Program-made: the position numbers and the translations under genes
Shown here: positions 38,372 through 59,914 of the stretch, in pieces
How positions within the stretch are numbered: the first letter of the stretch is position 1
Layout: every line of letters begins with the position of its first letter
Assembly: GCA_047495785.1 (NCBI GenBank)
Contig: JBLDXI010000074.1
Span: 930,001 to 994,000, forward strand
Length of the DNA: 64,000 nucleotides
Direction of reading: 5' to 3'
Origin: Lepidodermella squamata
Lineage: Eukaryota; Animalia; Gastrotricha
The notes under the pieces: model-generated
What the model was told of the DNA's origin: nothing
The model's input: the letters and a program-made list of their open reading frames with translations, nothing else
Database searches by the model: none

Positions 38372-38941
38372 TTAAGAAACAACAACGAGAGCACCACCGG
38401 TTTTGCGAACAATCCTGTACTTCGGACGCAGACAGACAGTTGCTTTGTGCCAGTGAGAGTAGCAGCACGAGTGGCCCGTCGGCTGGCAGTCGTGGTGGTG
38501 CAGGCAGCGGCGAGCGTTGCGGAAAGCCAACGGAACCGAGTGAGTCCTCTCGCCTTCGCCATCCACCTCAGCATCGGCCTCAGCTGCGTCATTGCCTTCT
38601 TCGCCCTCCTCGCCTTCTCCAGCCTCGCCAGCCATCGGCTTGCCCAACGGACGGCCGTTGCTGCACATAGGGCCGTCGATTTTGTCGTCGTAGCGCGGAC
38701 CGCCCAGCTTCTTGTCACGCTTCACCTCTTCGAGGATTTCGCGCCACAGGCGTTCGTCATTCGCGACCGGATCGACGATTTTGCCAGGTCGGTGGGTTGT
38801 AGTGCTCGAAGTTGTAGTCCAGTCGTGGCGATCGTCGTTGTCCCCGTCACCGAAATCGCCTTCCTCAGCTTCATCGGCCGTAATGCTGTAGGCCGTGCGG
38901 AGGGCGATTCCGAAAAGACTCAACAAAATGAAGAATTTCAT
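38372..38941 (-). CDS. Secreted Cys-rich prepro-protein, family B copy 1 (intronless)
   Basis: Signal peptide, acidic pro, Thr run, DGPMC, acidic spacer, then C-x5-C-x6-CC-x9-C and a basic tail. Confidence 0.85.
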   Translation of the reverse strand: MKFFILLSLFGIALRTAYSITADEAEEGDFGDGDNDDRHDWTTTSSTTTHRPGKIVDPVANDERLWREILEEVKRDKKLGGPRYDDKIDGPMCSNGRPLGKPMAGEAGEGEEGEEGNDAAEADAEVDGEGERTHSVPLAFRNARRCLHHHDCQPTGHSCCYSHWHKATVCLRPKYRIVRKTGGALVVVS

Positions 38942-39412
38942 TATAAAATGTTATTAGATTAAATTGTGTACGTTTGAATGATGATCAACATCGCAAATTC
39001 ACCGGTATTTAAGATGCCATAACACAAATGTTAGACCAAAGCCACCTGTGTGATAGACGGCGCACGATTTGCTGATATTTGTGTTTGATTTTCTTTAGAA
39101 GTGTGTTTCTCAGCTGGTGCTATTATTTCATTGCACTATTTCCCCAATCTTTACCCAACTAAATCGGCTCAGCTCTAAAACGATGTCCTTAGCAAAAAAA
39201 ATCGGCGCTATTGTTTGAGGTTTTTTAGAACCCACTATTTTTAGAATCGAAACTTCGCTCTGACGGTTCGGGAAGTTGCAACTTCACCGATATTTGAAAC
39301 GTTTGGGGGTTTAGAAGGAATAAAATCGTAGTTCGAAAAAACTCTGCAATGCTCGAGTTTACTGCTGTTGGGAATGATGATACAGAATAGAATTGTTTTA
39401 ACAGATCAACGA

Positions 39413-40062
39413 ATGTTCAACTCAATAAATGATACTGCGAGATCGATTTTGTTGTTTTGGTTCATCGTCACATCTCTTGCGGAACAGAATTTCGGCGAGA
39501 CTATCATAATCGAAGGCGAAACTTACGATGGTGGCGATGACTTTAAAGAAACAGAATCGGAAGATGGCAGTGAAACGCGATGGTTTTTCAGTCTCATGGG
39601 AGTAATTTTAGGTCAGACATCATATTCTCAAGTTGTGTTCAAATTTTCCTTTTTTCATTCTCTCAATCAGGACCTTTGTACAAATCGCTAAATACTGGAT
39701 TCGACAGGGTAAGCTACCGAGAGTTGGTCGGCGGCCCAATTTGCGAAAAAGGAACTCCTTACAAGCTGCTCAACAATGGGAAAATTGATCCAGCCACAAA
39801 GAATTCTCTGGCTGATTATGAGCATGAGTTCGAACAAGAAGGTGACGTCGATGATGATGCGGCTGATGACGACGTGCATAGCTTTGAGCGCAGAGCTACA
39901 TCAGTTGTAGCCTTACCACAGTGTAGGCGGAATCGTGACTGTTTGCTGCCGTATCGCGTCTGCTGTCCTCGCGTCAATGCAACAGGCTTCGAATGTCGAC
40001 AACCAAGAATCACCATAACTCGAACTCGCTTCGGTACATTAGTAAACCTTGCTCAAACCTGA
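39413..40062 (+). CDS. Secreted Cys-rich prepro-protein, family B copy 2; exons 39413-39611, 39671-40062
   Basis: Signal, acidic pro ending ETR, WFFSLMGVILG|PLYKSL, GGPIC, acidic spacer, RR, 5-Cys domain. Confidence 0.85.
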
Positions 40063-40645
40063 TCATCGCAATCTCTAGTATTTTGTTGTGCCCCAACTTT
40101 TTTTGAAAGTTATGCTTTGATCAACCAAATAAATTCTGACATTAACGCTGTTTGATACCTATGTTTATGGTAAATCACTCGAGTTTTGGCGGCTTTTTTA
40201 TTGAACCTTTTCAGCTGATCCATACAGGCTATTGCGATCTTGGAACTTGGAAATACAAGAGCCGGCGAAATATTCACTTTATGGATGGGGTTATGGTTCA
40301 CTGATCAAGTGAATTCCGGTACGCATTACAATGGCATAATCATGGCAGCGTTTGAATTCGGCTTTGAGTTGAGGTTATGAAGGCCTCTGATAAAGAGGAT
40401 AACTTGATCACCGTTATATTATTTCATTCATTTTCAAGCGGAAAAAACCGACCCGCCATTTTTTAATAAAATTCGATCAGGCTAATATAGGCACTGAAGC
40501 CTTATTCCGATTGACTTTGAATTTTAATTTTCGTACCCGATGATTCATAGTAGCCTTTCTCAGCTTCAATCGTGAATTATCCTGAAGATCGTAAAAATTA
40601 GGACTCTCCTTTTAGTCAGGCTAGTTTAGTTCAACAGTTTAGTTC

Positions 40646-41405
40646 ATAGACATAATATCAGTATAGACTGAATACTCACGAGAAAAGGGCGCCAGATGGT
40701 CAGCTAATTCACCAGAGGCTTGGAGGCCAAGTAAACAAAATATTCGATTCATTTTTTGTTGGTTCCGATCACAGTTTGAAAATTTTCCACCTCTAATTCA
40801 ATCGAAATTGAAGCAGTTCTTCAGTGATCCGTGTAGACCAGATCGAGCTCTACAATTCGATACTTGGAGCGATCTTGGATGAATTTTTATCGATTTTCTG
40901 GACATTTTCGAAAATCGAACGTGTATTCATCTATTATAAAAACCTGGACTTGGTGGAGGATTCAATTCAGAAACTTTCTTGACAGCACGTGCGCCGCATG
41001 CACATGTTGTGGTTGGAGTATCGAATTGTAGAGCTCGATCTAGTCTACACGGATCACTGAAGAACTGCTACAATTTCGATTGATTTAGAGGTGTAAATAT
41101 ATTTTTATTGCATCAGCGAATTTCAATTTATTCAATTTGAGTGGTTCATATTGCTCCTAAAATTTTGGAAAATAACCAGCGTGTTTATTGTGATGTCACC
41201 TATTTGGAACCAACAACACAAATTGGAAATTTTTTAAAACGTGATCGGAACCAACAAAAAAAGAATCGAATATTTTGTTTACTTGGCCTCCAAGCCTCTG
41301 ATGAATCAGCTGACCATCTGGCGCCAATGGCGTACACCCTTTTTCACGCGAGTGGGCGATCTCTACTGAATTATATCTATGGTCTATACTGATATTATGT
41401 CTATG
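40646..41405. mobile_element. Foldback MITE with CATAG termini (P-superfamily-like), 760 bp
   Basis: catagacataatatcagtatagac...gtctatactgatattatgtctatg, >200 bp of inverted homology; 8-bp TSD ttttagtt/gtttagtt. Confidence 0.85.
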
Positions 41406-41548
41406 GTTTAGTTCAACAGTTTAGTTCAACAGGCACGACTCCATCTGTCGCTTCAGTACACCTGTGACCACGAGGCCAGGCGAAATTAGAACACAAGAAT
41501 CAAAGGCAACTCATTTCGTTTCCTGTTTGCAGTTACAAATTCAACAAA

Positions 41549-42331
41549 ATGTTGTTGAGTGTTTTTGCGTCGCGTTGTGTTGCGATTTTTGCGCTGTTCA
41601 CCGCAGCATCGGCCAGTAATTGGAACACAACTGAAGAAGATGACGGCGATCGACTGGTGAACGCCATTTTCGCAGTTCTATCGATCGGCCAGATGGCTTA
41701 CGACCTGATAGCTGGAGCTGGTGGTAAAGTTTCGAATGAAGCTAGGAAGTGCACGAGCACGGTTTTAGCAGCGCCTTACACGATAACCGAAGAAAAAGGC
41801 AAGAAAGTCTGCCCTCCACGTCAGCCCTCATCAATGTGCCGAACCTCGCCGAGCAAAAAATTCTTCACTTACAACTTTCAAATGTGCACGTACAACAACA
41901 ACGGCGATGTGAATCGAAACACGATGCAGGTTAAGGCTGAGCAGGGTAAAAAGGAAGATTTCTACCTGGCCCAGGACAACTTGGAGACGAAGAAAGGCAC
42001 CCTCCAGCGCATTGTTTGGGAATTCACGGGCCTTCATTGCGTTAACTATTTATCGGTGAGTTGCGGCGAACAGGTTCTGGGAACAGCTGGAGCTCGCGCC
42101 GTTAATTTCGTCATCGGCGCTAAAGAGCTGCGCGGACTGTATAGCAAAGGCAAGCTCTCCGGTATCACGACCTGCGGCCCGAATAAAGCTGGGATTCAGG
42201 CTGGCGGTAAAGTTTCGATGACGATCAAAGATCAGGCGTTCTTGAGGTGCAAAGAAGACGAAAAGGAGTGCATCAAACGTTATGTTTCCATCTCGACCTC
42301 GTGGTCTGGCTGCAACAACGGCAGGCAGTAA
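41549..42331 (+). CDS. Secreted 260-aa orphan protein (signal, acidic pro, amphipathic helix, 10-Cys basic domain)
   Basis: Intronless ORF with coding-like codon usage; EEDDGDR then LVNAIFAVLSIGQMAYDLI; AATAAA at ~42390. Confidence 0.85.
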   Translation: MLLSVFASRCVAIFALFTAASASNWNTTEEDDGDRLVNAIFAVLSIGQMAYDLIAGAGGKVSNEARKCTSTVLAAPYTITEEKGKKVCPPRQPSSMCRTSPSKKFFTYNFQMCTYNNNGDVNRNTMQVKAEQGKKEDFYLAQDNLETKKGTLQRIVWEFTGLHCVNYLSVSCGEQVLGTAGARAVNFVIGAKELRGLYSKGKLSGITTCGPNKAGIQAGGKVSMTIKDQAFLRCKEDEKECIKRYVSISTSWSGCNNGRQ

Positions 42332-42904
42332 AATTACATTTTTTGAGAAAATTCGTTTCTGTACCGCGTTTGACAAGCATTATGATTGAAATAAAATGAA
42401 ATTTCGCTTGGGCTCATTTGTTTCTTCAATTTGAAGGTAATCCGGAAGAATCTTTAGCCGTGAGTTTAGTTTTGCTCACACCTTAACCATTGCATTAATT
42501 CCTAGCTTAGCGCTGAAGTTCCTGAAGTTCCCTCTTGGGTTCAACGAGCTTTGGGAAATCGTAAGGAAGCGCAGCTGAGTGGAGATGACCAAATCGAGTG
42601 CGGAGAATCCAGATGTAAATGAATTACGAGTGCTATATCAATAAATATCGCATGGGCACATCTACCAACAGTATATTTTTCAAGCGAATGCTATATTTGT
42701 ATGATATAACATGAGTAGGAATCTATATTTGAGTGAAGCACGAAATATAGATCGAGTAAAACGAATGAAACGAGTGAAATCGAGGCGGAACGAGTCGGTA
42801 GGCGAGTGGAGACGAGATTTCACGAGGTGAATGAGTTTTACGAGATCTATACAAGTGCTTCACGAAAATATAGGTTTCTACGAATGTTGTATCGTAAAAT
42901 ATTA

Positions 42905-44074: not shown

Positions 44075-44774
44075 CCAAAAAACTAGCTTCATCGCAGTAA
44101 ACTACGGGAGAGAAAAACGGGCAGAATAACCAACTAGAAATGATGCTTTATCGTCGAAAAATGCAGCCACCACGTTTTTTAGTAAAATGCGGCAAAGAAA
44201 TAACTTTGATTTGCATATGCGCGACAGTTTTTATTGCGAAAAACCATCATCAGCATTGCAGCTGAATTAGCGCTACGAGATCGCTCCCAGCTCGTGTTGC
44301 TAGTTTTTTTTGTGTCGATTCGCACGCGCGCATGGTTTTTTGCACTCACAAACAAGTGTGCATACGCAAATCATTGACCAGGAAGTAACGTAACCCATCG
44401 TAGCATGGGACCTTAATCAAAAAGTATCTCTTAAACTTTGGTAATTTCGAAAACTCTCCCCGTACTAACGAATTGGAGTTTTCTCCAATTCGTTAGTTTT
44501 CCCCGACTTTAAGTGCTGCCAAATTTCGTTTTTAGTGATTATTTCCTTTTTAAAGTCACTTTAAATTCACTTTACATTCAGGAAAAAATTAGTATACTAA
44601 ACTTTTTTTTCCAGTTTTCCCGATCCGAGAATTTGGGCTCAAAGTCCAAATTTTGCCTTGTAATATTTTCCGAATCAAAAACTTTTTCCTTGAAATTTTC
44701 TTTTCTTTTCGACCTTGCGGTTCGGAATTAAATCTAAAATTTTATTGGCCCATCCTTTCTTCTCTTCTTTCTCC

Positions 44775-46853
44775 ATGATCACCGTTTCTAAAACGGCTGA
44801 TCTTCTTATGCGTTTCGACGGTGAAGGCGAAATGCCTGAGCCTACTAACAGTGTGTCGCCCACTGCCCCGTCCGCAACGCCGCAGCTTGCCGAGTTCCTG
44901 ATCCAGGCTGGTCCTCAGCCTAGTACTAGTGTCCCCAAAAAAAGTAAGGGTGCAAGCGCTATGAAGTTAGGCTCGCAGGTTGACTCGACGTCCCTGTTAA
45001 CAAAGAGCGGGAATGGTTCAAGTTTAGGGGTTTCAAGCGCTTCTCAGTTAGACTCGAGAGTTGACTCGATGTCCTCTGCGACTGGGCGCGGTTCAAGCTT
45101 TAAGGGGCCCTCTTCCACCACAGGTGAAGTTGTTAAACGTAAGTCTGACAGCTCACCTGAAAGTAAGATACGCAAGGTAGCCTCAACAGTGAGGTTATCT
45201 GATTCTTCCAACGAGGAGTCCGCTGCTGTCGACGAGAACCAGGAGATGGAAGCCGAAGACCAAGAAGAAGGCGAGTACGTCGACCCAATCGGTGACCTAA
45301 GCGACAGCGACCCCGATACCGACGGCGACGATGACGAGGATGACGATGAAGACGAAGATGGCGAAATGGAGTGGACAACTATCAACGAAAACTCGAAGTC
45401 CAAGTTCCGTATCGTGATAGTCGACGGAATATCGCCGATTTTCTCGACCATCTACATGTGCCTAAGAGAACTGAACCGCGTGGCCCCAGACGTGAAACAT
45501 GTTCGTGTCTGGGTGTATCCCCGTGGCGCTTTTGGCATGCTCTGCAAGGATTTAGCCAGCGTCAACGCCGTCTTGAGCAAGGCCAACTGGCCTGAGAACG
45601 CCTTTGGCGGGAGAGCCCGACCACACAGGCCATCCAAGGTAGAGATTGATGAGGCACCAGGTGCCAAAGCGGTGTTGGAAGCGCAAGTCCCAACCGGCGA
45701 GCAAGCGGCGCGCATGGAAGCTCGAGCCAAGCATTTGGACGAAGACCGGCGTAAAGCCGTGTGTGTCAACTTCTTCGACGGGGCCTCTGTTGACGACATC
45801 CTCGACGGTTGGGAAGACGTCGTAGATCAGGTCTGGCCTATTAAAGGCACTACGACGTGCTTCGGGGTCCTCTGCAAATCGGTGCGTCTCTGTGAGGAAC
45901 TCGTGGCCAGAGGGCGCGACTTTCTTGGCCTCCGCATAGCCGCTAGGGTGTGGCGATCCGACCCAGAGGTAGAGATATGCGGCAGGTGTCTCAACATCGG
46001 CCATCTCACTGGGAACTGTCGAGCAGCTCTCCGGTGTGCTACCTGTGGGCAAGAAGGCCACGACAGCAGTAGTTGCAGGCAACAGGCGAAGAGGTGTGCA
46101 AGGTGTGATGGAAGTCATTCCGGCTTCTACAGAGGTTGCCGTATCGTTAAGAACGAGGCTGAGCGTCGCCGCAAAGCCGATGAAGCCGAAGCCAGAGCCA
46201 TCCGGAACCGAAGTGCCGGTGACGCCACCCTCCGAAATGGCATGTCATTCGCAGGAGCGACCGGAGGAAGACCAGTACCGCCACCAGTACCGCCACCAGC
46301 ACCACCAGGTTTCGAAGGATCTCAGCCCAACCCAGGGCTAGCAACTCGCAACATTCAGCCGAACGACTCGCTATCAACAGCTGAGCGATCTGAACTAACA
46401 GCCTTGCGCTTCAGCGTAGCCGCACAGGCGGCTGAAATTGACCGATTGAACAACTCCGTCGAGCGCCTCACTGCCGCACTAGAGAGGCTGATGAATCAAG
46501 GTCTGCCAGCGCCACCAGTAGCCGCAGCACAGCCTTTTCAGACACAAGAGATGGAGGATAGGCTGTTCAATAGGATTATGGACGCCTTCAACCGGGCCAA
46601 GATCGCAGGTGATATGCGGGCCCAAGCGTTCCCACAGCATATCATTGCTCGCCCAGCCATGATGGCTTCGCCGAACATGGCCGTCCAATCTCCTTCGCAC
46701 TACAGCGTCGAAAATCAAACTTCACCACCCTTTCAATGGGACGCTGGTCAGCTTGGTCAACCCATGGTGATCCAGTCGCAGTTCAGCCAACAGCCTACTT
46801 TCGTTCAGCGACCATTCTCTGGAGTGCCCCTTCAATACTCCAATAATGCCTAG
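44775..46853 (+). CDS. LINE ORF1 (gag-like, three CCHC knuckles), copy 1
   Basis: CGRCLNIGHLTGNC, CATCGQEGHDSSSC, CARCDGSHSGFYRGC; first in-frame ATG at 44775. Confidence 0.92.
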   Translation: MITVSKTADLLMRFDGEGEMPEPTNSVSPTAPSATPQLAEFLIQAGPQPSTSVPKKSKGASAMKLGSQVDSTSLLTKSGNGSSLGVSSASQLDSRVDSMSSATGRGSSFKGPSSTTGEVVKRKSDSSPESKIRKVASTVRLSDSSNEESAAVDENQEMEAEDQEEGEYVDPIGDLSDSDPDTDGDDDEDDDEDEDGEMEWTTINENSKSKFRIVIVDGISPIFSTIYMCLRELNRVAPDVKHVRVWVYPRGAFGMLCKDLASVNAVLSKANWPENAFGGRARPHRPSKVEIDEAPGAKAVLEAQVPTGEQAARMEARAKHLDEDRRKAVCVNFFDGASVDDILDGWEDVVDQVWPIKGTTTCFGVLCKSVRLCEELVARGRDFLGLRIAARVWRSDPEVEICGRCLNIGHLTGNCRAALRCATCGQEGHDSSSCRQQAKRCARCDGSHSGFYRGCRIVKNEAERRRKADEAEARAIRNRSAGDATLRNGMSFAGATGGRPVPPPVPPPAPPGFEGSQPNPGLATRNIQPNDSLSTAERSELTALRFSVAAQAAEIDRLNNSVERLTAALERLMNQGLPAPPVAAAQPFQTQEMEDRLFNRIMDAFNRAKIAGDMRAQAFPQHIIARPAMMASPNMAVQSPSHYSVENQTSPPFQWDAGQLGQPMVIQSQFSQQPTFVQRPFSGVPLQYSNNA

Positions 46854-49824
46854 TCTTAGTACACTTAGAAAAAGTAGAATCATCGTAATCCAGTGGAATT
46901 GCCAGGGCATCAAGGCGAAAAGAGCTGAACTTCTCCACATTATAGAGCAATATGGGCCTAATGTCATCCTGTTAAACGAGACATGGCTAAAGTTCGGCGA
47001 GAAATTCGACCTCCCTGGCTACACTGCTTTCCGCGTAGATAGATTAGGTGCGTCCGGGCTAAACTGTGGCGGCGTCGCAATCTTCATTAGTCAATCAAAG
47101 CCAATACTAGATTGTGCCGAAGTAAAGTTTGCGCCAGCCTCTAGAGGCGAGTGGCTTGCAGTTGAGCTGCTAGTAGGCGAAGTCAACGTCTCAACGAGAA
47201 TTACGATTGCCACAGGGTACAATCCTTCAAATAGCCCATTAGACACATCTTTCATTAGAGAGGTCTTGAGTGATCCGTCTACAAACTCGATCTTCGCTGG
47301 CGACTTGAACGCCTGGGCGGAGGAGCTAGGTTGCGCGGAATGGAACGTTCAGCGAACGGGAAGTGGCGGGCTCTTTTCGGAGTTCCTAAAAACCTCCCCT
47401 GTGGTATTGCATAGCTCACCAACTGCTCCCACGCGGTTCAGGGAAGGTCACGTGTCGCGAGTCTTAGATGTGTGGCTAAGTTCACTGGCTGGTGATAAGT
47501 GTTTCAACCGTGCGCCTGCTGTTCTAGATTGCTATCGAAGCGATCATGCCGTCACTATCGCGGGCCTCACACTCGTGCTCCCGGAGCGGAACTCCTGTTC
47601 ACCGTTGGCCAATGCCTCGGTGCCGGCAGCCGCTCGGGACGTTCGTTTCGATTTTTTGAACGCCGACTGGCCTGAATACCAGAGAGTATGCGCGGAGAAG
47701 ATAGCGCCAGTCGTTCGCCCAAAAGGCGGGGACTCGGTCAGGGCGCTGGACGTCTTCGCCGCAAGTATCTCCGAGGTAATAATGAGTAGCGCGAAAACCA
47801 CGCTAACTCGTGTGCCGGTGGCTAAATTGCCTAAGGTACGTCTAAGCCACGCTGTAAAGCGGGCTATCGAGGCAAGGAATCGGTGTGACAGGAAAAATCG
47901 GAACGAACGCTCTGCTGCGTCTAAAGCGGCTTTAAATGCTGCGACACGGCAGGTGGCGCGAGAGGTCGCGTTAGAGGCGGATAAAAAATGTCGGCGACGG
48001 TTGAACCACATAGCACAGCTTTTTCAGGCGCAGCAAGCTGCCCTGGCGTGGCAACACGCACAGCGTATTTTGGGGGAATCGAAAGGCTCGCAACGCGTGA
48101 TCCCCACCCTTGAATTAGCGAACGGGAAGAAGGTGACTGCAGACCCAGAGAAGGCGAGGGTTTTTGCTGAAAATTGGGCGCCGACGTTCCAGGCCGCGCC
48201 TCGTAGCTCACCGCACCAGGCGGACCAAGAATTTTGGGACTCGATCGACCAAGCATGCGAGGTAGACGAAGAGCTCAACGCCTCTCTAACAATACCAGAT
48301 AAGTTAGAGGTCATGATTTCTAGGAACGCCTTCAACTCCCAGCTTGCCCGGTTGAAGCTTAAAGCTCCTGGGGAAGATGGGATCCTCAACCCGTTGATTA
48401 AGAACGCCCCACCACCTCTCCTAGAGGCTATCCTTCTCCTGTTTAATTTATCTTTGAACGCCGGCTATCTGCCAGCTGCTTGGAAAATTGGAATTGTGGT
48501 ACCGGTGCCCAAGGCGGGGAAATCCCCACGGTCCCTGGATGGGTATAGGCCAGTTTCCTTAACCAGCTGCATGGCAAAGCTTCTGGAGGCCGTCGTGGCT
48601 GGGTTCATTCTCGAGTTCTGCTTGCGGAACAAGATTTTGACGCCGAGCCAAGTCGGGTTCCAGAAGTGGCTGTCAGTTTTGGATGCCATCCTCAGGCTTA
48701 TGCACGACATCACAGACGGTTTCGTGCATAAGGATGAGTTGGGCAGACCCGATAAATTAACTACAGTTGTGGCGTTCCTAGACTATAAGGCAGCTTTTGA
48801 TTCCATATGGCACAACGGTTTACGCATGGTCTTAAAAGGCCTTGGCCTACCCGTGGCCGTTGTGCGATGGATCTCAGATTTTTTACGCGACAGGCGTATG
48901 CGAGTCAGAGTAGGTGATAGCTGTAGTGAGGATGTCGAAGTAGCTTGCGGAGTCCCTCAGGGATCACCATTATCCCCGATACTCTTCATCATCTACACAT
49001 CTTCGTCCCTCCCAGCGGAGGTAGACAAGGACGACGCCCTCAAGAGAACTGCCGCGGCGGCATACGCCGACGACCAGGCTGTGTGGGCTACTGGGCGACC
49101 GGCCCCACTCGCAACTGCTCGTGTCCAAGCGGCACTTCGGGTCACAGAACGCTGGTCTCAGCGCTGGAGACTTGACCTGAACCCGAGGAAGTGCGAGTGG
49201 GTCGCATTCGGCGCCAACGTCAACCACACAGCTGGTCAACTCCAGTTGGGAGGCATCTGCCTGCCTAGAGTGCAACAGTTCAAGTACCTAGGTGTTTGGC
49301 TGTCCAAGCACTTGTGCTGGACGCCGCACTTAGAGCACGTCAGCGCACGAGCCCTTCCTCGTATTTTCGCCCTTTTTCGTGGCAGGGTAAAGACTCACCC
49401 CACCTTGGGTCTCCTGTTCTACAAGAGCGTCATCCGGCCGCTGTTGGAATTCGGTGCCCCGGCGTTCGCCAACTCGAAGCCACAGTTCATCGAAAAACTG
49501 GCGGTCTTAGAACGGCGGGCCCTTAAGATCATCTTGGGTCTCCCACGCCGGTGCCCGAATGAGATCTATCAGCGGCGGTTGAAGGCCACTTTTCCGGAGT
49601 TCCAGCTGATCGAAGAACGTTTGTCCACCCTATCGTTCAACTGCTTCAACAGGGCGCTTGAAGCAGGTAGCGTGCTAGGCGAAATAGTTCGTCAGAGTCG
49701 CGATAGGCCCGTGCCGGAGAGTATATCCCCAGTGCGTTTCTTTCTTGACCATCTATTGGGAGCTGGGCCTCTACCTTCGGTTAGATCGTCCTTTGATCGA
49801 CTTCCAGCGATCCTAGCAGTTTAG
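46846..49824 (+). CDS. LINE ORF2 (AP endonuclease + reverse transcriptase), copy 1
   Basis: QWNCQG, LNETW, GDLNA, SDH; YRPVSLTS, FLDYKAAFD, GVPQGSPLSP, YADD, KYLGV. No RNase H recognised. Confidence 0.97.
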   Translation: MPSLSTLRKSRIIVIQWNCQGIKAKRAELLHIIEQYGPNVILLNETWLKFGEKFDLPGYTAFRVDRLGASGLNCGGVAIFISQSKPILDCAEVKFAPASRGEWLAVELLVGEVNVSTRITIATGYNPSNSPLDTSFIREVLSDPSTNSIFAGDLNAWAEELGCAEWNVQRTGSGGLFSEFLKTSPVVLHSSPTAPTRFREGHVSRVLDVWLSSLAGDKCFNRAPAVLDCYRSDHAVTIAGLTLVLPERNSCSPLANASVPAAARDVRFDFLNADWPEYQRVCAEKIAPVVRPKGGDSVRALDVFAASISEVIMSSAKTTLTRVPVAKLPKVRLSHAVKRAIEARNRCDRKNRNERSAASKAALNAATRQVAREVALEADKKCRRRLNHIAQLFQAQQAALAWQHAQRILGESKGSQRVIPTLELANGKKVTADPEKARVFAENWAPTFQAAPRSSPHQADQEFWDSIDQACEVDEELNASLTIPDKLEVMISRNAFNSQLARLKLKAPGEDGILNPLIKNAPPPLLEAILLLFNLSLNAGYLPAAWKIGIVVPVPKAGKSPRSLDGYRPVSLTSCMAKLLEAVVAGFILEFCLRNKILTPSQVGFQKWLSVLDAILRLMHDITDGFVHKDELGRPDKLTTVVAFLDYKAAFDSIWHNGLRMVLKGLGLPVAVVRWISDFLRDRRMRVRVGDSCSEDVEVACGVPQGSPLSPILFIIYTSSSLPAEVDKDDALKRTAAAAYADDQAVWATGRPAPLATARVQAALRVTERWSQRWRLDLNPRKCEWVAFGANVNHTAGQLQLGGICLPRVQQFKYLGVWLSKHLCWTPHLEHVSARALPRIFALFRGRVKTHPTLGLLFYKSVIRPLLEFGAPAFANSKPQFIEKLAVLERRALKIILGLPRRCPNEIYQRRLKATFPEFQLIEERLSTLSFNCFNRALEAGSVLGEIVRQSRDRPVPESISPVRFFLDHLLGAGPLPSVRSSFDRLPAILAV

Positions 49825-51138: not shown

Positions 51139-53067
51139 ATGAAGTTAGGCTCGCAGGTTGACTCGACGTCCCTGTTAACAAAGAGCGGGATCGGTTCAAG
51201 TTTAGGGGTTTCAAGCGCTTCTCAGTTAGACCCGAGAGTTGACTCGACGTCCTCTGCGGCTGGGCTCGGTTCAAGCTTTAAGGGGCCCTCTCCCACCTCA
51301 GGTGAAACTGTTAAACGGAAGTCTGACAGCTCACCTGACAGTAAGGTACGCAAGATAGCTTCAACAGTGAGGCTATCTGCATCTTCCAACGAGGAGTCCG
51401 ATGCTGTCGTCGAGAACCAGGAGATGGATGCCGAGGATCAGGAAGAAGGTCAGCTCGTCGACCCAATCGGTGATCTGAGTAGCAGCGACCCCGATACCGA
51501 CGGCGACGATGACGAGGATGACGAGGATGACGAAGGTGAAATGGAGTGGCAAACTGTCAATGACTCGTCCAAGTCCAGGTTCCGTATCGTGATAGTCGAC
51601 GGAATATCGCCGATTTTCTCAACCATCTACATGTGCCTGAGAGAGCTGAATCGCGTGGCCCCAGACGTGAAACATATTCGCGTCTGGGTGTATCCCCGTG
51701 GTGCGTTTGGCATGCTCTGCAAGGACTTGGCCAGCGTCACCGCGGTCCTGAGCAAGGCCAACTGGCCTGAGGACGCCTTTGGTGGGAGAGCCCGACCCCA
51801 TAGGCCATCCAAGGTAGAAGTGGATGAGGCACCAGGTGCCAAGGCGGTGTTAGAAGCGCAAGTTCCAAGCGGCGAGCAAGCGGCACGCATGGAAGCTCGA
51901 GCCAAGCATTTGGACGAAGACCGGCGTAAAGCCGTGTGCGTCAACTTCTTCGACGGGGCCTCTGTTGACGACATCCTCGACGGTTGGGAAGACGTCGTAG
52001 ATCAGGTCTGGCCTATCAAAGGCACTACGACGAGCTTCGGGGTTCTCTGCAAATCGGTGCGTCTCTGCGAGGAACTCGTGGCCAGAGGGCGCGATTTCCT
52101 TGGCCTCCGCATAGCCGCCAGGGTGTGGCGTTCCGACCCAGAGGTAGAGATATGTGGCAGGTGTCTCAACATCGGCCATCTCACTGGGAACTGTCGAGCG
52201 GCTCTCCGGTGTTCTACCTGTGGGCAAGTAGGCCATGAAGGCAGTAGTTGCAAACAGCAGGCGAAGAGGTGCGCCAGATGCGATGGCAATCACTCCGGCT
52301 TCTACCGAGGTTGCCTTATCGTGAAGAACGAGGCCGAGCGTCGCCGCAAAGCCGATGAAGCCGAAGCCCGAGCCATTCGTAACCGAAGTACCGGAGATGC
52401 CAACCTCCGTAATGGCATGTCGTTTGCAGGAGCAGCCGGAGGTGGATACGCACAACCACCACCAGTACCACCACCTGTACCACCACCTGTACCGCAACCA
52501 GGACCACCAGGATTCAATGGAACCCGGCCCTACCAGAGACCGGCGTCTCACAACAACCACCAGGACGAGTCAACGCTAGCACCGGACGAACGAAGCGAGC
52601 TAACCACTCTACGGTTTAGCGTAGCCGCACAGGCGGCTGAAATTGATCGGCTAAACAGTTCTGTTGAGCGGTTGACGGCTGCCCTTGAGAAGTTACTCAA
52701 CCAAGGTCCTTCGATGCCAGCAATAGTACCACAACCGGTCGCACAACCGATTCCGCTCCAGGAAATGGAAGATCGTCTATTTGCAAGGATAATGGATGCG
52801 TTCAGCCGATGCAAGAACGCAGGCGATATGCGGGCCCAATCATTCCCGCAGCAAGTCATTGCTCGCCCAACCATGTTGCCTTCGTCGAACATGGTTGTTC
52901 ATTCTCCTTCGCACTACAGCGTCGAGGGCCAGAATGCAGTACCTTTTCAATGGGACGCTGGCCAGCTTGGTCAAGCCATGGTGATCCAGCCACAGTTCAG
53001 CCAACAGCCTACTTTCGTTCAGCGACCATTCTCTGGAGTGCCCCTTCAATACTCCAATAATGCCTAG
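51139..53067 (+). CDS. LINE ORF1 copy 2 (1-bp deletion at ~51123 uncouples the upstream ATG at 50957)
   Basis: Copy 1 aaaaaaagtaag versus copy 2 aaaaaaataag; the frame from MKLGSQ is open with three knuckles. Confidence 0.88.
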   Translation: MKLGSQVDSTSLLTKSGIGSSLGVSSASQLDPRVDSTSSAAGLGSSFKGPSPTSGETVKRKSDSSPDSKVRKIASTVRLSASSNEESDAVVENQEMDAEDQEEGQLVDPIGDLSSSDPDTDGDDDEDDEDDEGEMEWQTVNDSSKSRFRIVIVDGISPIFSTIYMCLRELNRVAPDVKHIRVWVYPRGAFGMLCKDLASVTAVLSKANWPEDAFGGRARPHRPSKVEVDEAPGAKAVLEAQVPSGEQAARMEARAKHLDEDRRKAVCVNFFDGASVDDILDGWEDVVDQVWPIKGTTTSFGVLCKSVRLCEELVARGRDFLGLRIAARVWRSDPEVEICGRCLNIGHLTGNCRAALRCSTCGQVGHEGSSCKQQAKRCARCDGNHSGFYRGCLIVKNEAERRRKADEAEARAIRNRSTGDANLRNGMSFAGAAGGGYAQPPPVPPPVPPPVPQPGPPGFNGTRPYQRPASHNNHQDESTLAPDERSELTTLRFSVAAQAAEIDRLNSSVERLTAALEKLLNQGPSMPAIVPQPVAQPIPLQEMEDRLFARIMDAFSRCKNAGDMRAQSFPQQVIARPTMLPSSNMVVHSPSHYSVEGQNAVPFQWDAGQLGQAMVIQPQFSQQPTFVQRPFSGVPLQYSNNA

Positions 53068-56038
53068 TCTTAGTACACTCAGAAAAAGTAGAATCATCGT
53101 AATCCAGTGGAATTGCCAGGGCATCAAGGCGAAAAGAGCTGAACTTCTCCACATTATAGAGCAATATGGGCCTCATGTCATTCTTTTAAACGAGACTTGG
53201 CTAAAGTTCGGCGAGAAATTCGACCTCCCTGGCTACACTGCTTTCCGCGTAGATAGATTAGGAGCTTACGGGCTAAACTGTGGCGGCGTCGCAATCTTTA
53301 TTAGTCAGTCAAAGCCAATACTAGATTGTGCCGAAGTAAAGTTTGCGCCAGCCTCTAGAGGCGAGTGGCTTGCAGTTGAGCTGCTAGTAGGCGAAGTCAA
53401 CGCCTCAGCGAGACTTACGATTGCCACAGGGTACAATCCTTCACATAGCCCATTAGACACATCTTTCATTAGAGAGGTCTTGAGTGATCCGTCTACAAAC
53501 TCGATCTTCGCTGGCGACTTGAACGCCTGGGCGGAAGAGTTAGGTTGCGCGGACTGGAACGTTCAGCGAACGGGAAGCGGGGGGCTTCTTTCGGAGTACC
53601 TAAAATCCTCCTCTGTGGTTTTGCATAGCTCGCCAACTGCTCCCACGCGGTTCAGGGAAGGTCACGTGTCGCGAGTCTTAGATGTATGGCTCAGTTCACT
53701 GGCTGCTGATAAGTGTTTCAACCGTGCGCCTGCTGTTCTAGATTGCTATCGAAGCGATCATGCCGTCACTATCGCGGGCCTCACACTCGTGCTCCCGGAG
53801 CGGAACTCCTGTTCACCGTTGGCCAATGCCTCGGTGCCGGCAGCCGCTCGGGACGTTCGTTTCGATTTTTTGAACGCCGACTGGCCTGAATACCAGAGAG
53901 TATGCGCGGAGAAGATAGCGCCAGTCGTTCGCCCAAAAGGCGGGGACTCGGTCAGGGCGCTGGACGTCTTCGCCGCAAGTATCTCCGAGGTAATAATGAG
54001 TAGCGCGAAAACCACGCTAGCTCGTGTGCCGGTGGCTAAATTGCCTAAGGTACGACTCAGCCATGCTGTCAAGCGGGCTATCGAGGCCAGGAATCGGTGT
54101 GACGAGAAAAATCGAAATGAACGCTCTGCTGCATCTAAAGCGGCTTTAAATGCTGCGACACGGCAGGTGGCGCGAGAGGTCGCGATAGAGGCGGATAAAA
54201 AATGTCGGCGGCGGTTGAACCACATAGCACAGCTTTTTCAGGCGCAGCAAGCTGCCCTGGCGTGGCAACACGCACAGCGTATTTTGGGGGAATCGAAAGG
54301 CTCGCAACGCGTGATCCCCACCCTTAACTTAGCGAACGGGACGAAGGTGACGTCAAACCCAGAGAAGGCGAGGGTTTTTGCTGAAAATTGGGCGCCGACG
54401 TTCCAGGCCGCGCCTCGTAGCTCACCGCATCAGGCGGACCAAGAATTTTGGGACTCGATCGACCAAGCATGCGAGGTAGACGAGGAGCTCAATGCCTCTC
54501 TAACAATACCAGATAAATTAGACGTCATGATTTCTAGGAACGCGTTCAACTCCCAGCTTGCCCGGTTGAAGCTTAAAGCTCCCGGGGAAGATGGGATCCT
54601 CAACCCGTTGATTAAGAATGCTCCCCCACCTCTCCTAGAGGCTATCCTTCTCCTGTTTAATTTATCTTTGAACGCCGGCTATCTGCCAGCTGCTTGGAAA
54701 ATTGGAATTGTGGTACCGGTGCCCAAGGCGGGGAAATCGCCACGGTCCCTGGATGGGTATAGGCCAGTTTCCTTAACCAGCTGCATGGCAAAGCTTCTGG
54801 AGGCCGTCGTGGCTGGGTTCATTCTTGAGTTCTGCTTGCGGAACAAGATTTTGACGCCAAGCCAAGTCGGGTTCCAGAAGTGGCTGTCAGTCTTGGATGC
54901 CATCCTCAGACTTATGCATGACATCACAGACGGGTTCGTGCATAAAGATGAGTTGGGCAGACCTGATAAATTAACTACTGTTGTGGCGTTCCTTGACTAC
55001 AAGGCAGCTTTCGACTCCATTTGGCACAACGGTTTACGAATGGTCCTTAAAGGCCTTGGCCTACCCGTAGCCGTTGTGCGGTGGATTTCGGACTTCTTAC
55101 GCGACAGGCGTAAGAAAGTAAGGGTAGGAGACAGTTTCAGTGAAGACGTCGAGGTAGCTTGCGGAGTCCCTCAGGGATCTCCTTTATCCCCGATACTCTT
55201 CATCATCTACACTTCTTCGTCCCTCCCAGCGGAGGTCGACAAGGACGACGCGGTAAAAAGAACTGCCGCGGCGGCATACGCCGACGACCAGGCTGTGTGG
55301 GCTACAGGGCGACCGGCCCCACTCGTCACTGCTCGTGTCCAAGCGGCACTTCGGGTCACAGAACGCTGGTCTCAGCGCTGGAGACTTGACCTGAACCCGA
55401 GGAAGTGCGAGTGGGTCGCATTCGGCGCCAACGTCAACCTCACAGCTGGTCAACTCCAGTTGGGAGGCATCTGCCTGCCTAGAGTGCAACAGTTCAAGTA
55501 CCTAGGTGTTTGGCTGTCCAAGCACTTGTGCTGGACGCCGCACTTAGAGCACGTCAGCGCACGAGCCCTTCCTCGTATTTTCGCCCTTTTTCGTGGCAGG
55601 GTAAAGACTCACCCCACCTTGGGTCTCCTGTTCTACAAGAGCGTCATCCGGCCGCTGTTGGAATTCGGTGCCCCGGCGTTCGCCAACTCGAAGCCACAGT
55701 TCATCGAAAAACTGGCGGTCTTAGAACGGCGGGCCCTTAAGATCATCTTGGGTCTCCCACGCCGGTGCCCGAATGAGATCTATCAGCGGCGGTTGAAGGC
55801 CACTTTTCCGGAGTTCCAGCTGATCGAAGAACGTTTGTCCACCCTATCGTTCAACTGCTTCAACAGGGCGCTTGAACCAGGTAGCGTGCTAGGCGAAATA
55901 GTTCGTCAGAGTCGCGATAGGCCCGTGCCGGAGAGTAAATCCCCAGTGCGTTTCTTTCTTGACCATCTATTGGGAGCTGGGCCTCTACCTTCGGTTCGAT
56001 CGTCCTTTGATCGACTTCCAGCGATCCTAGCAGTTTAG
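53060..56038 (+). CDS. LINE ORF2 (APE + RT), copy 2
   Basis: 992 aa, all catalytic motifs intact. Confidence 0.97.
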   Translation: MPSLSTLRKSRIIVIQWNCQGIKAKRAELLHIIEQYGPHVILLNETWLKFGEKFDLPGYTAFRVDRLGAYGLNCGGVAIFISQSKPILDCAEVKFAPASRGEWLAVELLVGEVNASARLTIATGYNPSHSPLDTSFIREVLSDPSTNSIFAGDLNAWAEELGCADWNVQRTGSGGLLSEYLKSSSVVLHSSPTAPTRFREGHVSRVLDVWLSSLAADKCFNRAPAVLDCYRSDHAVTIAGLTLVLPERNSCSPLANASVPAAARDVRFDFLNADWPEYQRVCAEKIAPVVRPKGGDSVRALDVFAASISEVIMSSAKTTLARVPVAKLPKVRLSHAVKRAIEARNRCDEKNRNERSAASKAALNAATRQVAREVAIEADKKCRRRLNHIAQLFQAQQAALAWQHAQRILGESKGSQRVIPTLNLANGTKVTSNPEKARVFAENWAPTFQAAPRSSPHQADQEFWDSIDQACEVDEELNASLTIPDKLDVMISRNAFNSQLARLKLKAPGEDGILNPLIKNAPPPLLEAILLLFNLSLNAGYLPAAWKIGIVVPVPKAGKSPRSLDGYRPVSLTSCMAKLLEAVVAGFILEFCLRNKILTPSQVGFQKWLSVLDAILRLMHDITDGFVHKDELGRPDKLTTVVAFLDYKAAFDSIWHNGLRMVLKGLGLPVAVVRWISDFLRDRRKKVRVGDSFSEDVEVACGVPQGSPLSPILFIIYTSSSLPAEVDKDDAVKRTAAAAYADDQAVWATGRPAPLVTARVQAALRVTERWSQRWRLDLNPRKCEWVAFGANVNLTAGQLQLGGICLPRVQQFKYLGVWLSKHLCWTPHLEHVSARALPRIFALFRGRVKTHPTLGLLFYKSVIRPLLEFGAPAFANSKPQFIEKLAVLERRALKIILGLPRRCPNEIYQRRLKATFPEFQLIEERLSTLSFNCFNRALEPGSVLGEIVRQSRDRPVPESKSPVRFFLDHLLGAGPLPSVRSSFDRLPAILAV

Positions 56039-57537
56039 GCTGTTGTCGGATGTTAGAGGCGGAAAGCCAGCGGCGGGTGGCGGTCCACGGAAGCAACGAC
56101 CCGAGCGCAGCTTGTCGCGGGGAGGGCAGGTTCGTTGCGGGTGGCGATGAGAGCATCGCTCCCTGCGCGGCCGGACCTTTCCGGTTCCTGACTAGTGGCG
56201 GATAGATGCTATCCGTGCGCTGTAGGTTCCCTCTCAGTTCCTCTCTTCTATCTTATTTCTTTCTCTAGTCCCCTAGGTCTTTTCAAATTATCTTTTCAAA
56301 ATCTTTATATATGTGAAAGGCAATCGGTTCGGGTCCGGTTAAATCGTATTTTGTTATGTGCCGCAAGAGGCCCCGGTTCGAGTCCGGCTATGTTTTCTGT
56401 TTTCTTGTCCTAGATCTTAGACTTTTTAAAATTGAATTGTAATGCCGAGGCATGGTCCTTAAGGCATGTTCTTAGTTTGCGGATCGTCGATCCTGGTAGC
56501 AGTTGGGCCTCGGGTGGCGGCACGCACCAAACGGCGGCCCGAGGCGATGAGTGGTTGGTTCCTTTTGGTGGCTGATGGACTATCTGTAGATTTTCGTCGA
56601 TGCAGGCAGCGGTTGGGCCTCGGGTGGCGGCACGCGCAAAGCGGCGGCCCGAGGCGTTGGCTTGGAAGTATTCCCGTATTAACATTATAATGAACACTGT
56701 ATATTTATAGTTATTTGTCATTCTGTCGACCTCGCTTAATACGCGGAGCCGTAGCTGTGCATATTCAATTTGCTAACACTGAGGGACCACTAACAGCCCG
56801 GTAATCTCCTATTTAGCCTGCGGGCTGAGGAATTGTTTTTCTAATTTACCTAATAAACCAACACTTCATAATGACTCTACACAAAAAACTACCATGCCAG
56901 GCCGGCTCACATGCTCGCTCCGCTCGCATGGTAATGGCGGCAAAGTATTGTCATGTTGTTTGAGTGATCAGCTATCAGCTGAAATCTCTGACTTGACCCG
57001 TGAAAGTGTACTATGGCGATTACTGACTGTAATTGCTTTTAACTAATAGCGAAGAAGACCAGAAATTAAGACCAGAAATGAACATGCCCTTTGATGAGGT
57101 GAACTTTCCCCTCTGCTTATCATGCATAGGGAACTGAGTGCTCAATGCTTTCTCAAATTCTCATCAATTTCTTTATTACATTTTTTTACTTCTTATTTAA
57201 AAAAATTCTACATATTTCATTTGTTTGCTAACCAGCCTCAAATTTTTAGTCCGTTACCTCCTTGTGTAAACAAGCCGCTAAATTTTAATAATATTTTAGC
57301 AATGTACGTGTGCAATTTTTGAGAATTGAACCGATGCCAGCTTGCCTCCGCCTTCGTGTTATCATTCACTAAGTGCATCGGTATACCCTATACCCGAAAC
57401 ACGTGAATGCACCTCGTCATACACGTGAAAACGAATTTGAACAGTTGGCGGAATTTACCGTAAAAATGCCTATAAAAGTGCATGACTGAGCAGTTAATTT
57501 TTACTATCCTCTTTTCGTTTTCAACTTTCGTACAATC

Positions 57538-57881
57538 ATGAACAAGATCATCTTTCTGACTCTTGCAGTGGTGAGTTTCCCGTCGGCGTTATATCTTGCT
57601 TATGATAAAACTTCATTTTAAAGGCTTTCGTGGCTGTTTTGGCCGTATCAGCGGAAGATAAGAAGCACAACACGGCCAAGAAGCCTTCGGGTGATGCATC
57701 CAAATCCCATGGTGCCAGCAACGGCGGCCACAACGCCGGAAAGCGTGCCCATGGCAACAAGCACGGCCACAAGAATTCCACCAGGGTTCACGGTGCCAAC
57801 AAGCCGCAATCGGCTCAGAAGCTCGCTTTGCGCGAGGCTGACTTTGAAGAGAGTAGAAAATTAGGTAGGTACATACGATGA
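57538..57881 (+). CDS. Secreted cationic His/Gly/Lys peptide precursor, family A copy 3; exons 57538-57570, 57624-57881
   Basis: Same signal and intron; HGAxN/HGNK repeats; LREADFEE; TATAAAA at 57471. Confidence 0.85.
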
Positions 57882-58190
57882 AGAGCTAGCTCGTGGAGAC
57901 AAGAAGAAGAAGGACACCATGCAAAAAACGCTGAAAAAGCCTTGAGCATGAAGCATGAATCACACTGTGTGGAGCCGATTCGGTATTGGCTGTGAAGCAT
58001 TTATATGTGGAGCCGTTCTTTGGTATTTGTCGGTTATTGTATTGTTTGCTGTGTTATTGTGTGACAGTAGTCTGGTGCTTTCATGAGTTTCGTGAGAGAT
58101 ATGGTGGAATGAGTTTCAAGAAATAAAGCATTAGAAAGGCATTATTTTTATAGAATTATATCTTTTCTTCGGCGTACACAAATTATACAG

Positions 58191-58390
58191 TTTACAATGA
58201 AATCGCTGGCAAGACTGGTTTCCACAAGGACCAGGCTCTAGACAAGAAGGGCGAAGCGATCAAGTGCAAGAGGAAGACGTTCGCCGACAAGAGCCACAAC
58301 AAGGTCAACGTGTTCAGCTATGAATCGGGCACCAACAACTTTGGCGACTACGACTCCGATTTTCATTGGACGAGCACGGCCGCCGGGTAA
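58191..58390 (+). CDS. Candidate alternative terminal exon of family A copy 3
   Basis: Donor G|gtaggt at 57864/5 and acceptor tacag| at 58190 join in frame, adding ~66 codons with G/C-ending bias. Confidence 0.4.
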
Positions 58391-59180
58391 GGAACCGCAC
58401 CCAAGGCCGGAATCAGCTAGATGCTAGATGTGACTCCAGTGAAAGAAAATTGGCTCGTCTGGTTGGTATAAGTCTTCTTCAAAAGCTTCTGTGCAGTCCA
58501 AAATGGTTTTGTCAAAGATCCAACGTAAAAAGTGGATTAGCGATTCTTCAACCATTGAACAGAGATGAAGGCTAACAGGCTAAAACCGAACGTAGCGATG
58601 ACTTTTTGTAATATTTTTGTGTAGTGCGAATTTTTGCTCAAGCTCAATGTTCTCATCTCGAAATAAAATGATCAAGTTTCAATGCCAGCTTTTGCGTCAT
58701 CTGGCTCACTCTGAAAACTGGTGATTCTTCATCTGGTGAAAACAGGTGATACTGATTCTGGGGCCATTAGCACCGATTTGTTTGCTTTTTCATCATTCTT
58801 GTTTATAAAACGCGTTTATTCCAACGTTTCCGTTATACTCAATAACCTTCTTCAGAGATAGGTTAAGAAATTAAATCGAAATTTTAAGTAAAGTTAAGAA
58901 TTAAGTTGGCTGTTTAAAGCATCTTGAAATTGTAATCTGGCTAGTTTTCCATCCTATTTTTACACCTCTCATGGAATATCGGCTCCGTTTTTTCATCATT
59001 GATGAATCAAGTTTGTTCTCTTTAGATATTGAGGAGATGAGACCATCCCTTATGATTTGATGCTAAAAGCACAGAAAGCATTTTGAGCTTGGCGTAAAAA
59101 ATGCCATCTTGTACAATGTACAAGATAGGTTAAACATTGTTTGAACTCTGTTCTACATTATAGAAAGATTTTTTATTGAA

Positions 59181-59914
59181 ATGCAGTGGATGCGAGTATT
59201 TCTGGCGCTATGCGTCTCGGCAACTGCCCCGATTATTGCGAGAGATATTTCAGAGCGAACATTCGAACCGGAAGATGATGTTAGTGCCCTGACTGATGTC
59301 GAGGAGGACGGCAGTTCAACTAGATGGTTCTTCCTCATTCCTTTAATTATCGGTATGAACACATTTATTCCTCATCCTGCCAGCATTTGGCTTATCCGAT
59401 GTTTCAGTTCAATTAGATGAATTGTTAAGTTTTTCAACAACTGTTCCGTAACTTTTAATTTGCTAAGAAAAATACTTCGAGAATGATTTCCGGCTCAAAA
59501 TGCTGAACGAGATTTCATGTTTTCACTCTAGGACCGTTATTCAAATTGTTAACGCCCGGGCCCGAAATCCCGGAAAAAGACTACAGCGACTACGTCGGCG
59601 GTCCCATCTGTGAAAAAAATGCATTGTATGGGAAGCTCAAACAGCACGCCCAAGTCAATCCGGCAAAAAATGTTCAAGCTGATGCAGGAATAGAGGAGAC
59701 TTACGATGAAGTCACAGCTGATCACGACCGCGACCGACGGGCAACCGCGCCACCAAATGGGATAAGGCACGAATGCCGACGCCATAGTGATTGCCTGAGG
59801 CCGTACCGCGTTTGCTGCTTGCGTAGAAACGGAGCTGGCTACGAATGTCGAGCCCCGCGTCTTGCTGTGACGCATACACGCTACGGCACTTTTGTAAACC
59901 TCGCAAAACAGTAG
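59181..59914 (+). CDS. Secreted Cys-rich prepro-protein, family B copy 3; exons 59181-59352, 59532-59914
   Basis: Signal, acidic pro ending STR, WFFLIPLIIG|PLFKLL, GGPIC, acidic spacer, RR, 5-Cys domain; same intron as copy 2. Confidence 0.87.

Follow-up and report, generated by a model that had tools for sequence, protein, structure and literature searches.

A 64,000-nucleotide window from the genome of Lepidodermella squamata, a gastrotrich (positions 930,001-994,000 of contig JBLDXI010000074.1; feature coordinates below count from the window start) contains three related genes, g1, g2 and g3, whose small products end in a cysteine-rich domain. Our tentative explanation, which we hold at somewhat less than even confidence, is that g1-g3 are functional members of a tandemly expanded secreted family of two-part proteins with a tethered WAP-like core and a likely role in defence. 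The most fitting view of the family is that of a secreted, cysteine-rich effector of WAP-like kind whose core is split, and in which a lone cysteine of the N-terminal half would form a third disulfide with a C-terminal domain of five cysteines, so that the two halves would stay covalently tied.

The upstream cysteine is invariant at 17 of 17 loci in the genome and in one distant relative (P0001), and the mature cysteine count, with signal-peptide cysteines set aside, is 6, 8 or 10 and even in nine of the ten complete copies counted. Because of this invariance and these even counts, an upstream half-cystine that completes the five-cysteine domain appears to be the most economical reading. Conservation of this cysteine across homologs had been set beforehand as a test of the idea that it supplies a sixth half-cystine, and with this outcome the idea stays plausible.

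Three paralogs in a local gene family

The original prediction described three divergent paralogs with a common layout, and this was borne out. All three open reading frames are present at the coordinates it gave, with DGPMC, GGPIC and GGPIC around the upstream cysteine, NARR, FERR and RDRR before the C-terminal domain, five cysteines and a cationic tail in g1, g2 and g3, respectively; they are genuine paralogs. The intron of g2 was read from sequencing run X1, which we take to be complementary DNA (cDNA) from the reverse complement of the SMART cDNA primer at a contig end, and the splice sites of g3 were placed from GT..AG borders, reading frame and homology with g2. The features of the three genes are as follows (aa, amino acids; nt, nucleotides).

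38372-38941, minus strand: g1, a single exon of 189 aa, coordinates including the stop codon, from the open reading frame and alignment
38663-38665, minus strand: codon of the g1 upstream cysteine (Cys93, in DGPMC), an invariant alignment column
38432-38506, minus strand: five-cysteine core of g1, Cys146, 152, 159, 160 and 170 (C-x5-C-x6-CC-x9-C)
39413-39611, plus strand: g2 exon 1, covering the signal, the acidic stretch, SETR and the first part of the hydrophobic helix (WFFSLMGVIL); loose cDNA ends at 39612 and 39669 confirm where it stops
39612-39670, plus strand: g2 intron, 59 nt, GT..AG, phase 1; contigs of the cDNA run X1 show the junction of 39611 with 39671
39671-40062, plus strand: g2 exon 2, with helix end, VGGPIC (Cys codon 39742-39744), acidic spacer, FERR, five-cysteine core (39922-39996), cationic beta tail and stop
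59181-59352, plus strand: g3 exon 1, covering the signal, the acidic stretch, SSTR and the first part of the hydrophobic helix (WFFLIPLII)
59353-59531, plus strand: predicted g3 intron, 179 nt, GT..AG, phase 1
59532-59914, plus strand: g3 exon 2, with helix end, VGGPIC (Cys codon 59609-59611), spacer, RDRR, five-cysteine core (59774-59848), cationic beta tail and stop

The introns of g2 and g3 lie at homologous positions inside the hydrophobic helix. The protein encoded by g1 runs from a signal (aa 1-19) through an acidic, threonine-rich stretch, a tryptophan helix ERLWREILEEVKRDKK that is charged and not hydrophobic, DGPMC, an acidic spacer and NARR to a histidine-rich five-cysteine domain and a beta tail. 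The histidine content of this domain (38432-38506, minus strand) is unusually high, with six histidines in CLHHHDCQPTGHSCCYSHWHK, which suggests metal binding or a pH-dependent charge. The three proteins can be aligned across the upstream cysteine, the spacer and the C-terminal domain, with G-P-x-C, D-C, CC, C, P and G invariant, and the spacing of the five cysteines is exactly C-x5-C-x6-CC-x9-C in each, followed by the cationic tail, for which AlphaFold2 predicts beta strands. In a six-frame search of the genome, g3 matched g2 with an expect value (E) of 2e-24, and the family profile picked up g1 at E 5.8e-31, so the similarity of the three genes is far beyond chance.

A six-frame profile search of this short-intron animal genome (121.2 Mb, 151 contigs) revealed at least 17 family loci, 15 of them on the window's contig between 874 and 1141 kb (~270 kb) and a single locus on each of contigs C13 and C14; the copy at 1028 kb has stops. 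All full-length copies follow one order: a signal-like N-terminus, an acidic stretch, a tryptophan-containing helix, [FM]-V-G-G-x-x-C (consensus also G-[GP]-x-x-C), an acidic indel-rich spacer, usually a furin-type or dibasic site, C-x5-C-x(4-6)-CC-x(8-10)-C-R-x-P, and a beta hairpin. Invariant Cys, D, P and G columns are found in the family alignments. Very hydrophobic helices occur in g2, g3, L005, L003 and L004; those of g1, L006-8 and L017 are amphipathic or charged. In the two-exon copies L003, L004 and L014, the upstream cysteine with its G-P-x-C motif is encoded in an upstream exon, and outlying copies show this arrangement too. The N-termini of full-length copies consist of a short polar stretch, a hydrophobic core of 10-15 residues and then small residues, and this putative signal peptide in every full-length copy suggests that the proteins are secreted. 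Two near-identical copies on different contigs (L009:1354-1977 and L012:1360-1965, both minus strand) carry an extra C-terminal four-cysteine module, C-x5-C-x8-CC, with a Gly/Lys-rich tail, GKGKGKGKGG; the extra module resembles an incomplete second copy of the domain's first half.

Both g1 and g2 are transcribed. A cDNA contig of run X1, 143 deep and ending in the SMART adaptor, covers g1 at 38330-38862, and another run spans the gene at 38414-38952. For g2, cDNA contigs extend across 39697-40076, and loose ends in X1 cross from 39611 to 39671, confirming the intron. Run X4, whose source organism is that of the assembly, covers g1 and g2 only and leaves the intergenic DNA uncovered. The gene g3 is weakly represented, with 0.10 of the sampled words found in the cDNA-type run X1.

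All regions of the proteins are under purifying selection. Between close paralogs, the ratio of nonsynonymous to synonymous substitution rates (dN/dS) was 0.04-0.24 for the part from the helix to GGxxC, 0.13-0.17 for the C-terminal domain and 0.15-0.51 for the spacer. A g1 variant, 93% identical, was found in a run from another organism; among the differences listed, those from the helix to GPMC (aa 59-117) are synonymous only, while the spacer (aa 118-126) has five replacements. This constraint, in the variant and in the dN/dS values, argues that the N-terminal half is not a throwaway part.

Beyond this genome, an exhaustive search of 1.84 billion representative proteins with the profile yielded one convincing relative, P0001 (260 aa, E 3e-12), from eukaryotic contigs of metagenome assemblies, which keeps the family order of parts: IWRHLWNLV, AGGPWC and C-x5-C-x6-CC-x9-C-R-S-P-R. 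Three marginal cysteine-rich or low-complexity matches, P0002-P0004, belong to no Pfam family and were not accepted as relatives. A word-indexed protein search with g3 exon 2 gave no match, an ESM Atlas feature search with the whole protein and the C-terminal domain gave nothing usable, and scanning metagenome contigs with a degenerate DNA pattern produced four matches by chance, all unrelated and put to no further use, one of them on a contig labelled as human-gut metagenome. The absence of the family elsewhere is weak evidence, since the collection of 1.84 billion lacks the family's own proteins too. The family is new as a family and has a very narrow known distribution, namely this animal and one metagenome relative. 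The claim that its architecture comes from no named family also stands: no Pfam match exceeded the cut-off, with nothing consistent across members, and searches of the Protein Data Bank (PDB) by sequence and fold were empty.

The cysteine framework and WAP domains

WAP proteins (PF00095), such as SLPI, elafin, waprins and crustins, share with the family the spacing C-x4-D-C-x5/6-CC with a further cysteine 7-9 residues on, a G-x-C(-P) motif at the first cysteine, and a small cationic secreted domain. The canonical WAP domain has eight cysteines (C-C-C-C-CC-x3-C-x3-C), bonded C1-C6, C2-C7, C3-C5 and C4-C8 (PMC11509556), whereas the family has six and lacks equivalents of Cys2 and Cys7. If the upstream cysteine corresponds to Cys1, the two missing cysteines are exactly one bonded pair in this connectivity. 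We suggest that the family core may be a WAP four-disulfide core split by a long insertion, in which the upstream cysteine would be Cys1, followed by Cys3, Cys4, Cys5-Cys6 and Cys8, the pair Cys2-Cys7 having been lost. The predicted bonds would then be C0-Cd, Ca-Cc and Cb-Ce (C0 being the upstream cysteine and Ca to Ce those of the domain), so that the upstream cysteine would pair with the second cysteine of the CC doublet. The family differs from WAP proteins in the acidic disordered insertion of 30-65 residues between Cys1 and Cys3, often with a furin-type site, and in the added N-terminal tryptophan helix and C-terminal beta hairpin.

The genome contains at least 20 canonical WAP domains, ten of which were made into a profile and compared with the family profile by hhalign. 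The two aligned over 28 columns with a probability of 22-25% and P 8e-4, with the five cysteines in register (Ca with Cys3, Cb with Cys4, CC with Cys5-6 and Ce with Cys8). None of 300 column-shuffled WAP profiles reached the real value of 21.9 (mean 10.2, standard deviation 2.1, maximum 21.6). In addition, g3 matched the Pfam WAP model at 15.6 bits (E 0.02), below its gathering cut-off of 20.8 bits. The member L014 (SGPLCP) and the relative P0001 (GGPWCP) keep C-P after the upstream cysteine, as in the canonical G-x-C-P. Taken together, a WAP origin of the core is coherent and suggestive, though not proven, and we put it slightly below even; the fit of the cysteine framework to a degenerate WAP core is suggestively better than its fit to a knottin.

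On contig C14, two more five-cysteine genes lie within 3.5 kb after L014 on the same strand (region L036, G000:C14:396000-402500, plus strand).

L036:4683-4904, plus strand: five-cysteine framework with an upstream AGPC exon and RIRRRR, passing the Pfam WAP model at 28.4 bits
L036:2492-2884, plus strand: a divergent five-cysteine copy with upstream SGPCP

The trio formed by L014 and these two genes may be intermediate between canonical WAP domains and the family. The canonical WAP genes of the genome do not have the family's N-terminal architecture.

Structure prediction with AlphaFold2 on the family alignment gave a confident C-terminal domain for g1 (aa 141-189, predicted local distance difference test, pLDDT, about 84), consisting of a short helix between the first two cysteines and a four-strand meander, and a spacer below 50. 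For an 89-aa construct made from L005, a 158-aa copy with a short spacer, MVGGPVC...YTP was modelled as two short strands (pLDDT about 66-73) and the spacer reached 50-57. Prediction of a complex between the N-terminal segment and the C-terminal domain of L005 scored 0.03, which answers neither way. With both AlphaFold2 models, Foldseek found nothing in the PDB at E <=0.001; a wide VIA-align search gave only signal-helix matches for the full model and none at Z >=2 for the 89-aa model. The best hit of an Atlas fold search had a template modelling (TM) score of 0.39, with one weak Kunitz+WAP row, and a sequence profile search of the PDB returned nothing at E up to 10.

Several of these results weigh against a tethered WAP-like core with a defence role. 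The genes of the window fall below the Pfam WAP cut-off, and 11 of the 12 members scanned, including g1 and g2, gave no WAP match at all. The hhalign probability is only 22-25%, and one shuffled profile came to 21.6 where the real one gave 21.9. No alignment of the upstream segment to the WAP N-terminus was obtained, not even after the spacer had been taken out; the bridging copy on contig C14 (L036:4683-4904) did not match the family profile significantly (E 0.039); and no fold match to WAP, or to any other fold, was obtained in the PDB or the Atlas. The copy L010(+) possibly has seven cysteines, an odd count. The mature proteins are strongly negative overall, into which simple charge masking fits poorly. 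Finally, disulfides, cleavage and secretion are all predicted, and the defence role is argued solely from analogy and neighbouring genes.

Processing, charge and competing explanations

At the domain-side end of the spacer, furin-type or dibasic sites (NARR, FERR, RDRR, RERR, KVKR, RRR, RKKR, RRKR and RRRR) are present in about 11 of the 17 copies. The copies L009, L012, L010(+) and L017 are without any dibasic site, so cleavage is not a family-wide requirement, and in P0001 the sole furin-type site (RHKR) adjoins the GGPWC segment and not the domain. No copy has a second basic site right after GGxxC; at most one cut could therefore be made, and the spacer would stay on one chain. Copies with a site in the spacer, roughly two thirds, would be cut once to give a disulfide-linked two-chain molecule, while those without it would remain single-chain, with nothing excised. 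The acidic half may mask or chaperone the cationic domain, and in some copies the helix might be hydrophobic enough to be membrane-active itself. Two ideas about these parts were tried and dropped: compensation of charge between the halves, given that in nearly all copies the charge of the acidic half exceeds that of the cationic domain, and a transmembrane reading of the hydrophobic segment of g2 and g3, which has 16-18 residues with Pro and Gly and whose topology would put the cysteine-rich domain in the cytosol.

The main competitors for the core concern its fold and the fate of the N-terminal half. The original prediction took the domain for a five-cysteine inhibitor cystine knot (knottin), the upstream GPxC cysteine bonding the first cysteine of the CC doublet and the spacer being excised like a C-peptide to leave a heterodimer. 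The invariant upstream cysteine, the even cysteine counts and the basic sites before the C-terminal domain in most copies agree with this model; moreover, C-x5-C-x6-CC-x9-C is compatible with the first five knottin cysteines, the marginal match P0004 (E 7e-4) combines this spacing with an additional, sixth cysteine downstream, and two-chain knottins are known in spiders (PMC7232441). However, the contiguous domain has five cysteines, and the sixth lies 30-65 residues upstream, with none downstream in g1-g3, and not downstream as in C-C-CC-C-C. Pfam knottin and conotoxin models reached E 0.67 or worse (2 of 12 members), Foldseek and VIA-align gave no knottin match (a weak negative for so small a domain), AlphaFold2 gave the helix and meander described above, and the profile comparison favours the WAP register. 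With no basic site after GGxxC in any window copy, there is no second cut for excision, and four or five copies lack any site. Excision of the spacer and the knottin fold are thus not upheld. The two-chain heterodimer would hold for the copies with a candidate cut and not for L009, L012, L010(+) and L017; the GPxC cysteine is retained as the probable sixth half-cystine, while a WAP-type core, itself only suggestive, would pair it with the second and not the first cysteine of the doublet. A match to a known domain that is connected differently was among the outcomes that the original prediction had named as counting against it. A knottin identity of the core seems unlikely to us, and the full scheme with excision improbable. 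In a conventional pro-peptide arrangement, everything before the basic site would be discarded as a folding aid or charge mask, and the five-cysteine peptide would homodimerise or keep a free thiol. Defensin-type and toxin precursors typically run from a signal through an anionic pro-region and RxxR to a cationic cysteine-rich peptide, and the family matches this layout, with furin-type sites in about 11 of 17 copies. Yet the part from the helix to GGxxC is as constrained as the C-terminal domain by both measures given above, the upstream cysteine is invariant even in the site-less L009, L012, L010(+) and L017, and the only furin-type site of P0001 is not next to its domain, which leaves this arrangement unlikely.

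Two further explanations leave the fold aside and concern function. The proteins might be signalling peptides, hormone- or neuropeptide-like and acting on receptors, comparable with expanded insulin-like families, and a secretory precursor with convertase-type sites, a multigene cluster and purifying selection on all parts are what such peptides would show. In insulin and relaxin, the B chain carries C-x11-C and the A chain CC-x3-C-x8-C. The family pattern does not fit this; there are no paired dibasic sites, and the profile search of 1.84 billion representatives found no relatives beyond one narrow lineage. A low-complexity acidic spacer of such length, a strongly cationic domain and the high g1 contig depth of 143 look more like an effector or structural protein; we consider a signalling role very improbable. 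A structural or material role in the eggshell, in adhesive glands or in the scales of the cuticle, with opposite charges driving assembly or coacervation and cysteines cross-linking molecules, would account for the oppositely charged halves, the low-complexity D/E/G spacers, the lineage restriction and the high g1 transcript level, and the metagenome relative P0001 adjoins Thr-rich mucin-like secreted genes. But these are small proteins with no repeats, the even cysteine counts and the compact, conserved disulfide domain suggest internal bonds, and furin-type sites and a hydrophobic helix are atypical of matrix proteins; we think such a role improbable.

Known two-part systems resemble the proposed split WAP-like core only in part. 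The spider toxin CsTx-13 of Cupiennius salei shares a small CC-containing disulfide domain and a precursor of signal, pro-peptide and mature part, and its own feature is a loop opened by a protease to give a disulfide-linked heterodimer (PMC7232441). CsTx-type toxins also combine a cysteine-rich domain with an amphipathic helix (PMC7232441); in the family the helix is N-terminal and set off by the acidic spacer, and CsTx toxins are processed by way of PQM motifs and not RxxR. Sea urchins have heterodimeric antimicrobial peptides, the centrocins, which likewise derive two disulfide-held chains from one precursor ordered as signal, pro-sequence, chain, interchain segment and chain (PMC4805251). 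They have, unlike the family, a single disulfide and no cysteine-rich domain, and show no sequence similarity to it; a 24-aa interchain segment is removed from them, whereas members of the family have at most one candidate cut. The total of six half-cystines, a CC doublet within the C-terminal part and the two-chain product of the original prediction recall insulin and relaxin, from which the family differs in a split of 1 + 5 and not 2 + 4, in other spacing and in the lack of dibasic pairs flanking a C-peptide, and to which no homology was found. Charge-masked precursors, such as pro-defensins and the eosinophil major basic protein with its pro-piece, place an anionic N-terminal region and a convertase-type site before a cationic cysteine-rich domain. 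The family has the same order, with the difference that its anionic part contains an invariant cysteine and a conserved helix under purifying selection and outweighs the charge of the domain, and that some copies have no cleavage site.

Possible role and genomic neighbourhood

Host defence is the function of many WAP proteins. The cationic disulfide domain with its acidic partner, the hydrophobic helix and the tandem expansion point in the direction of a secreted defence-type effector, and analogy with crustins, waprins and other cationic WAP proteins, together with the cationic-peptide gene neighbourhood, suggests that host defence, antimicrobial or protease-inhibiting, is probably the likeliest role. 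A more specific picture, in which a WAP- or knottin-type core split by an acidic insertion with a convertase site yields a two-chain defence molecule, with a membrane-active tryptophan helix tethered to a cationic mini-domain, strikes us as rather doubtful; if true, it would amount to a new class of host-defence peptide.

If the split WAP-like core is real, the family would be a clear natural case of a small disulfide domain whose half-cystines are parted by a long, disordered and cleavable insertion, and would help in understanding both the origin of two-chain peptides and the tolerance of disulfide cores to being split. It would also join an apparent orphan family to the WAP superfamily, and would provide a first candidate secreted-effector family in gastrotrichs. 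To our knowledge no gastrotrich immune effectors have been described, although no dedicated literature search was made. The first gastrotrich genome dates from 2024 (PMC11660948). Should the WAP link and the tether fail, the family would be one more lineage-restricted cysteine-rich secreted family of the kind common in poorly sampled animals.

Other genes and elements were found in and around the window, and those described next likewise hint at a defence-type effector. An open reading frame of 342 aa with an ApoL domain (PF05461, E 5e-12) lies at 21632-22660 on the plus strand; ApoL is a membrane-active innate-immunity family. Past the window end, 1.6 and 8.3 kb beyond it, are two polyprotein-like reading frames (L035:1631-3301 and L035:8272-8853, both minus strand), in which Lys/His-rich cationic units (e.g. 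EDKKKGHKKGHKGNKKDKPKS) are parted by an invariant R-EAAYEEEVA-R spacer, resembling multi-peptide precursors. A 260-aa secreted-looking reading frame at 41549-42331 (plus strand), with no Pfam match, has a signal, an acidic EEDDGDR and a hydrophobic helix ending in AGGKV, followed by a different, larger cysteine-containing domain, and the leader module may be common to neighbouring secreted families.

Between g2 and g3, two GC-rich (about 54%) copies of a non-long terminal repeat (non-LTR) retrotransposon stand in tandem at 44715-49824 and 51139-56038 (plus strand), each with an ORF1 (712 or 642 aa, no Pfam match) and a 992-aa ORF2 encoding an apurinic/apyrimidinic endonuclease (APE)-type endonuclease and a reverse transcriptase. 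An LTR-retrotransposon RNase H fragment (PF17917, E 5e-27) is located at 7521-8222 on the minus strand. Two exons at 2933-3733 and 14125-14991 (plus strand) encode a glycosyltransferase family 2 domain (E about 1e-19) and probably belong to two paralogous genes of the polypeptide N-acetylgalactosamine (GalNAc)-transferase type.

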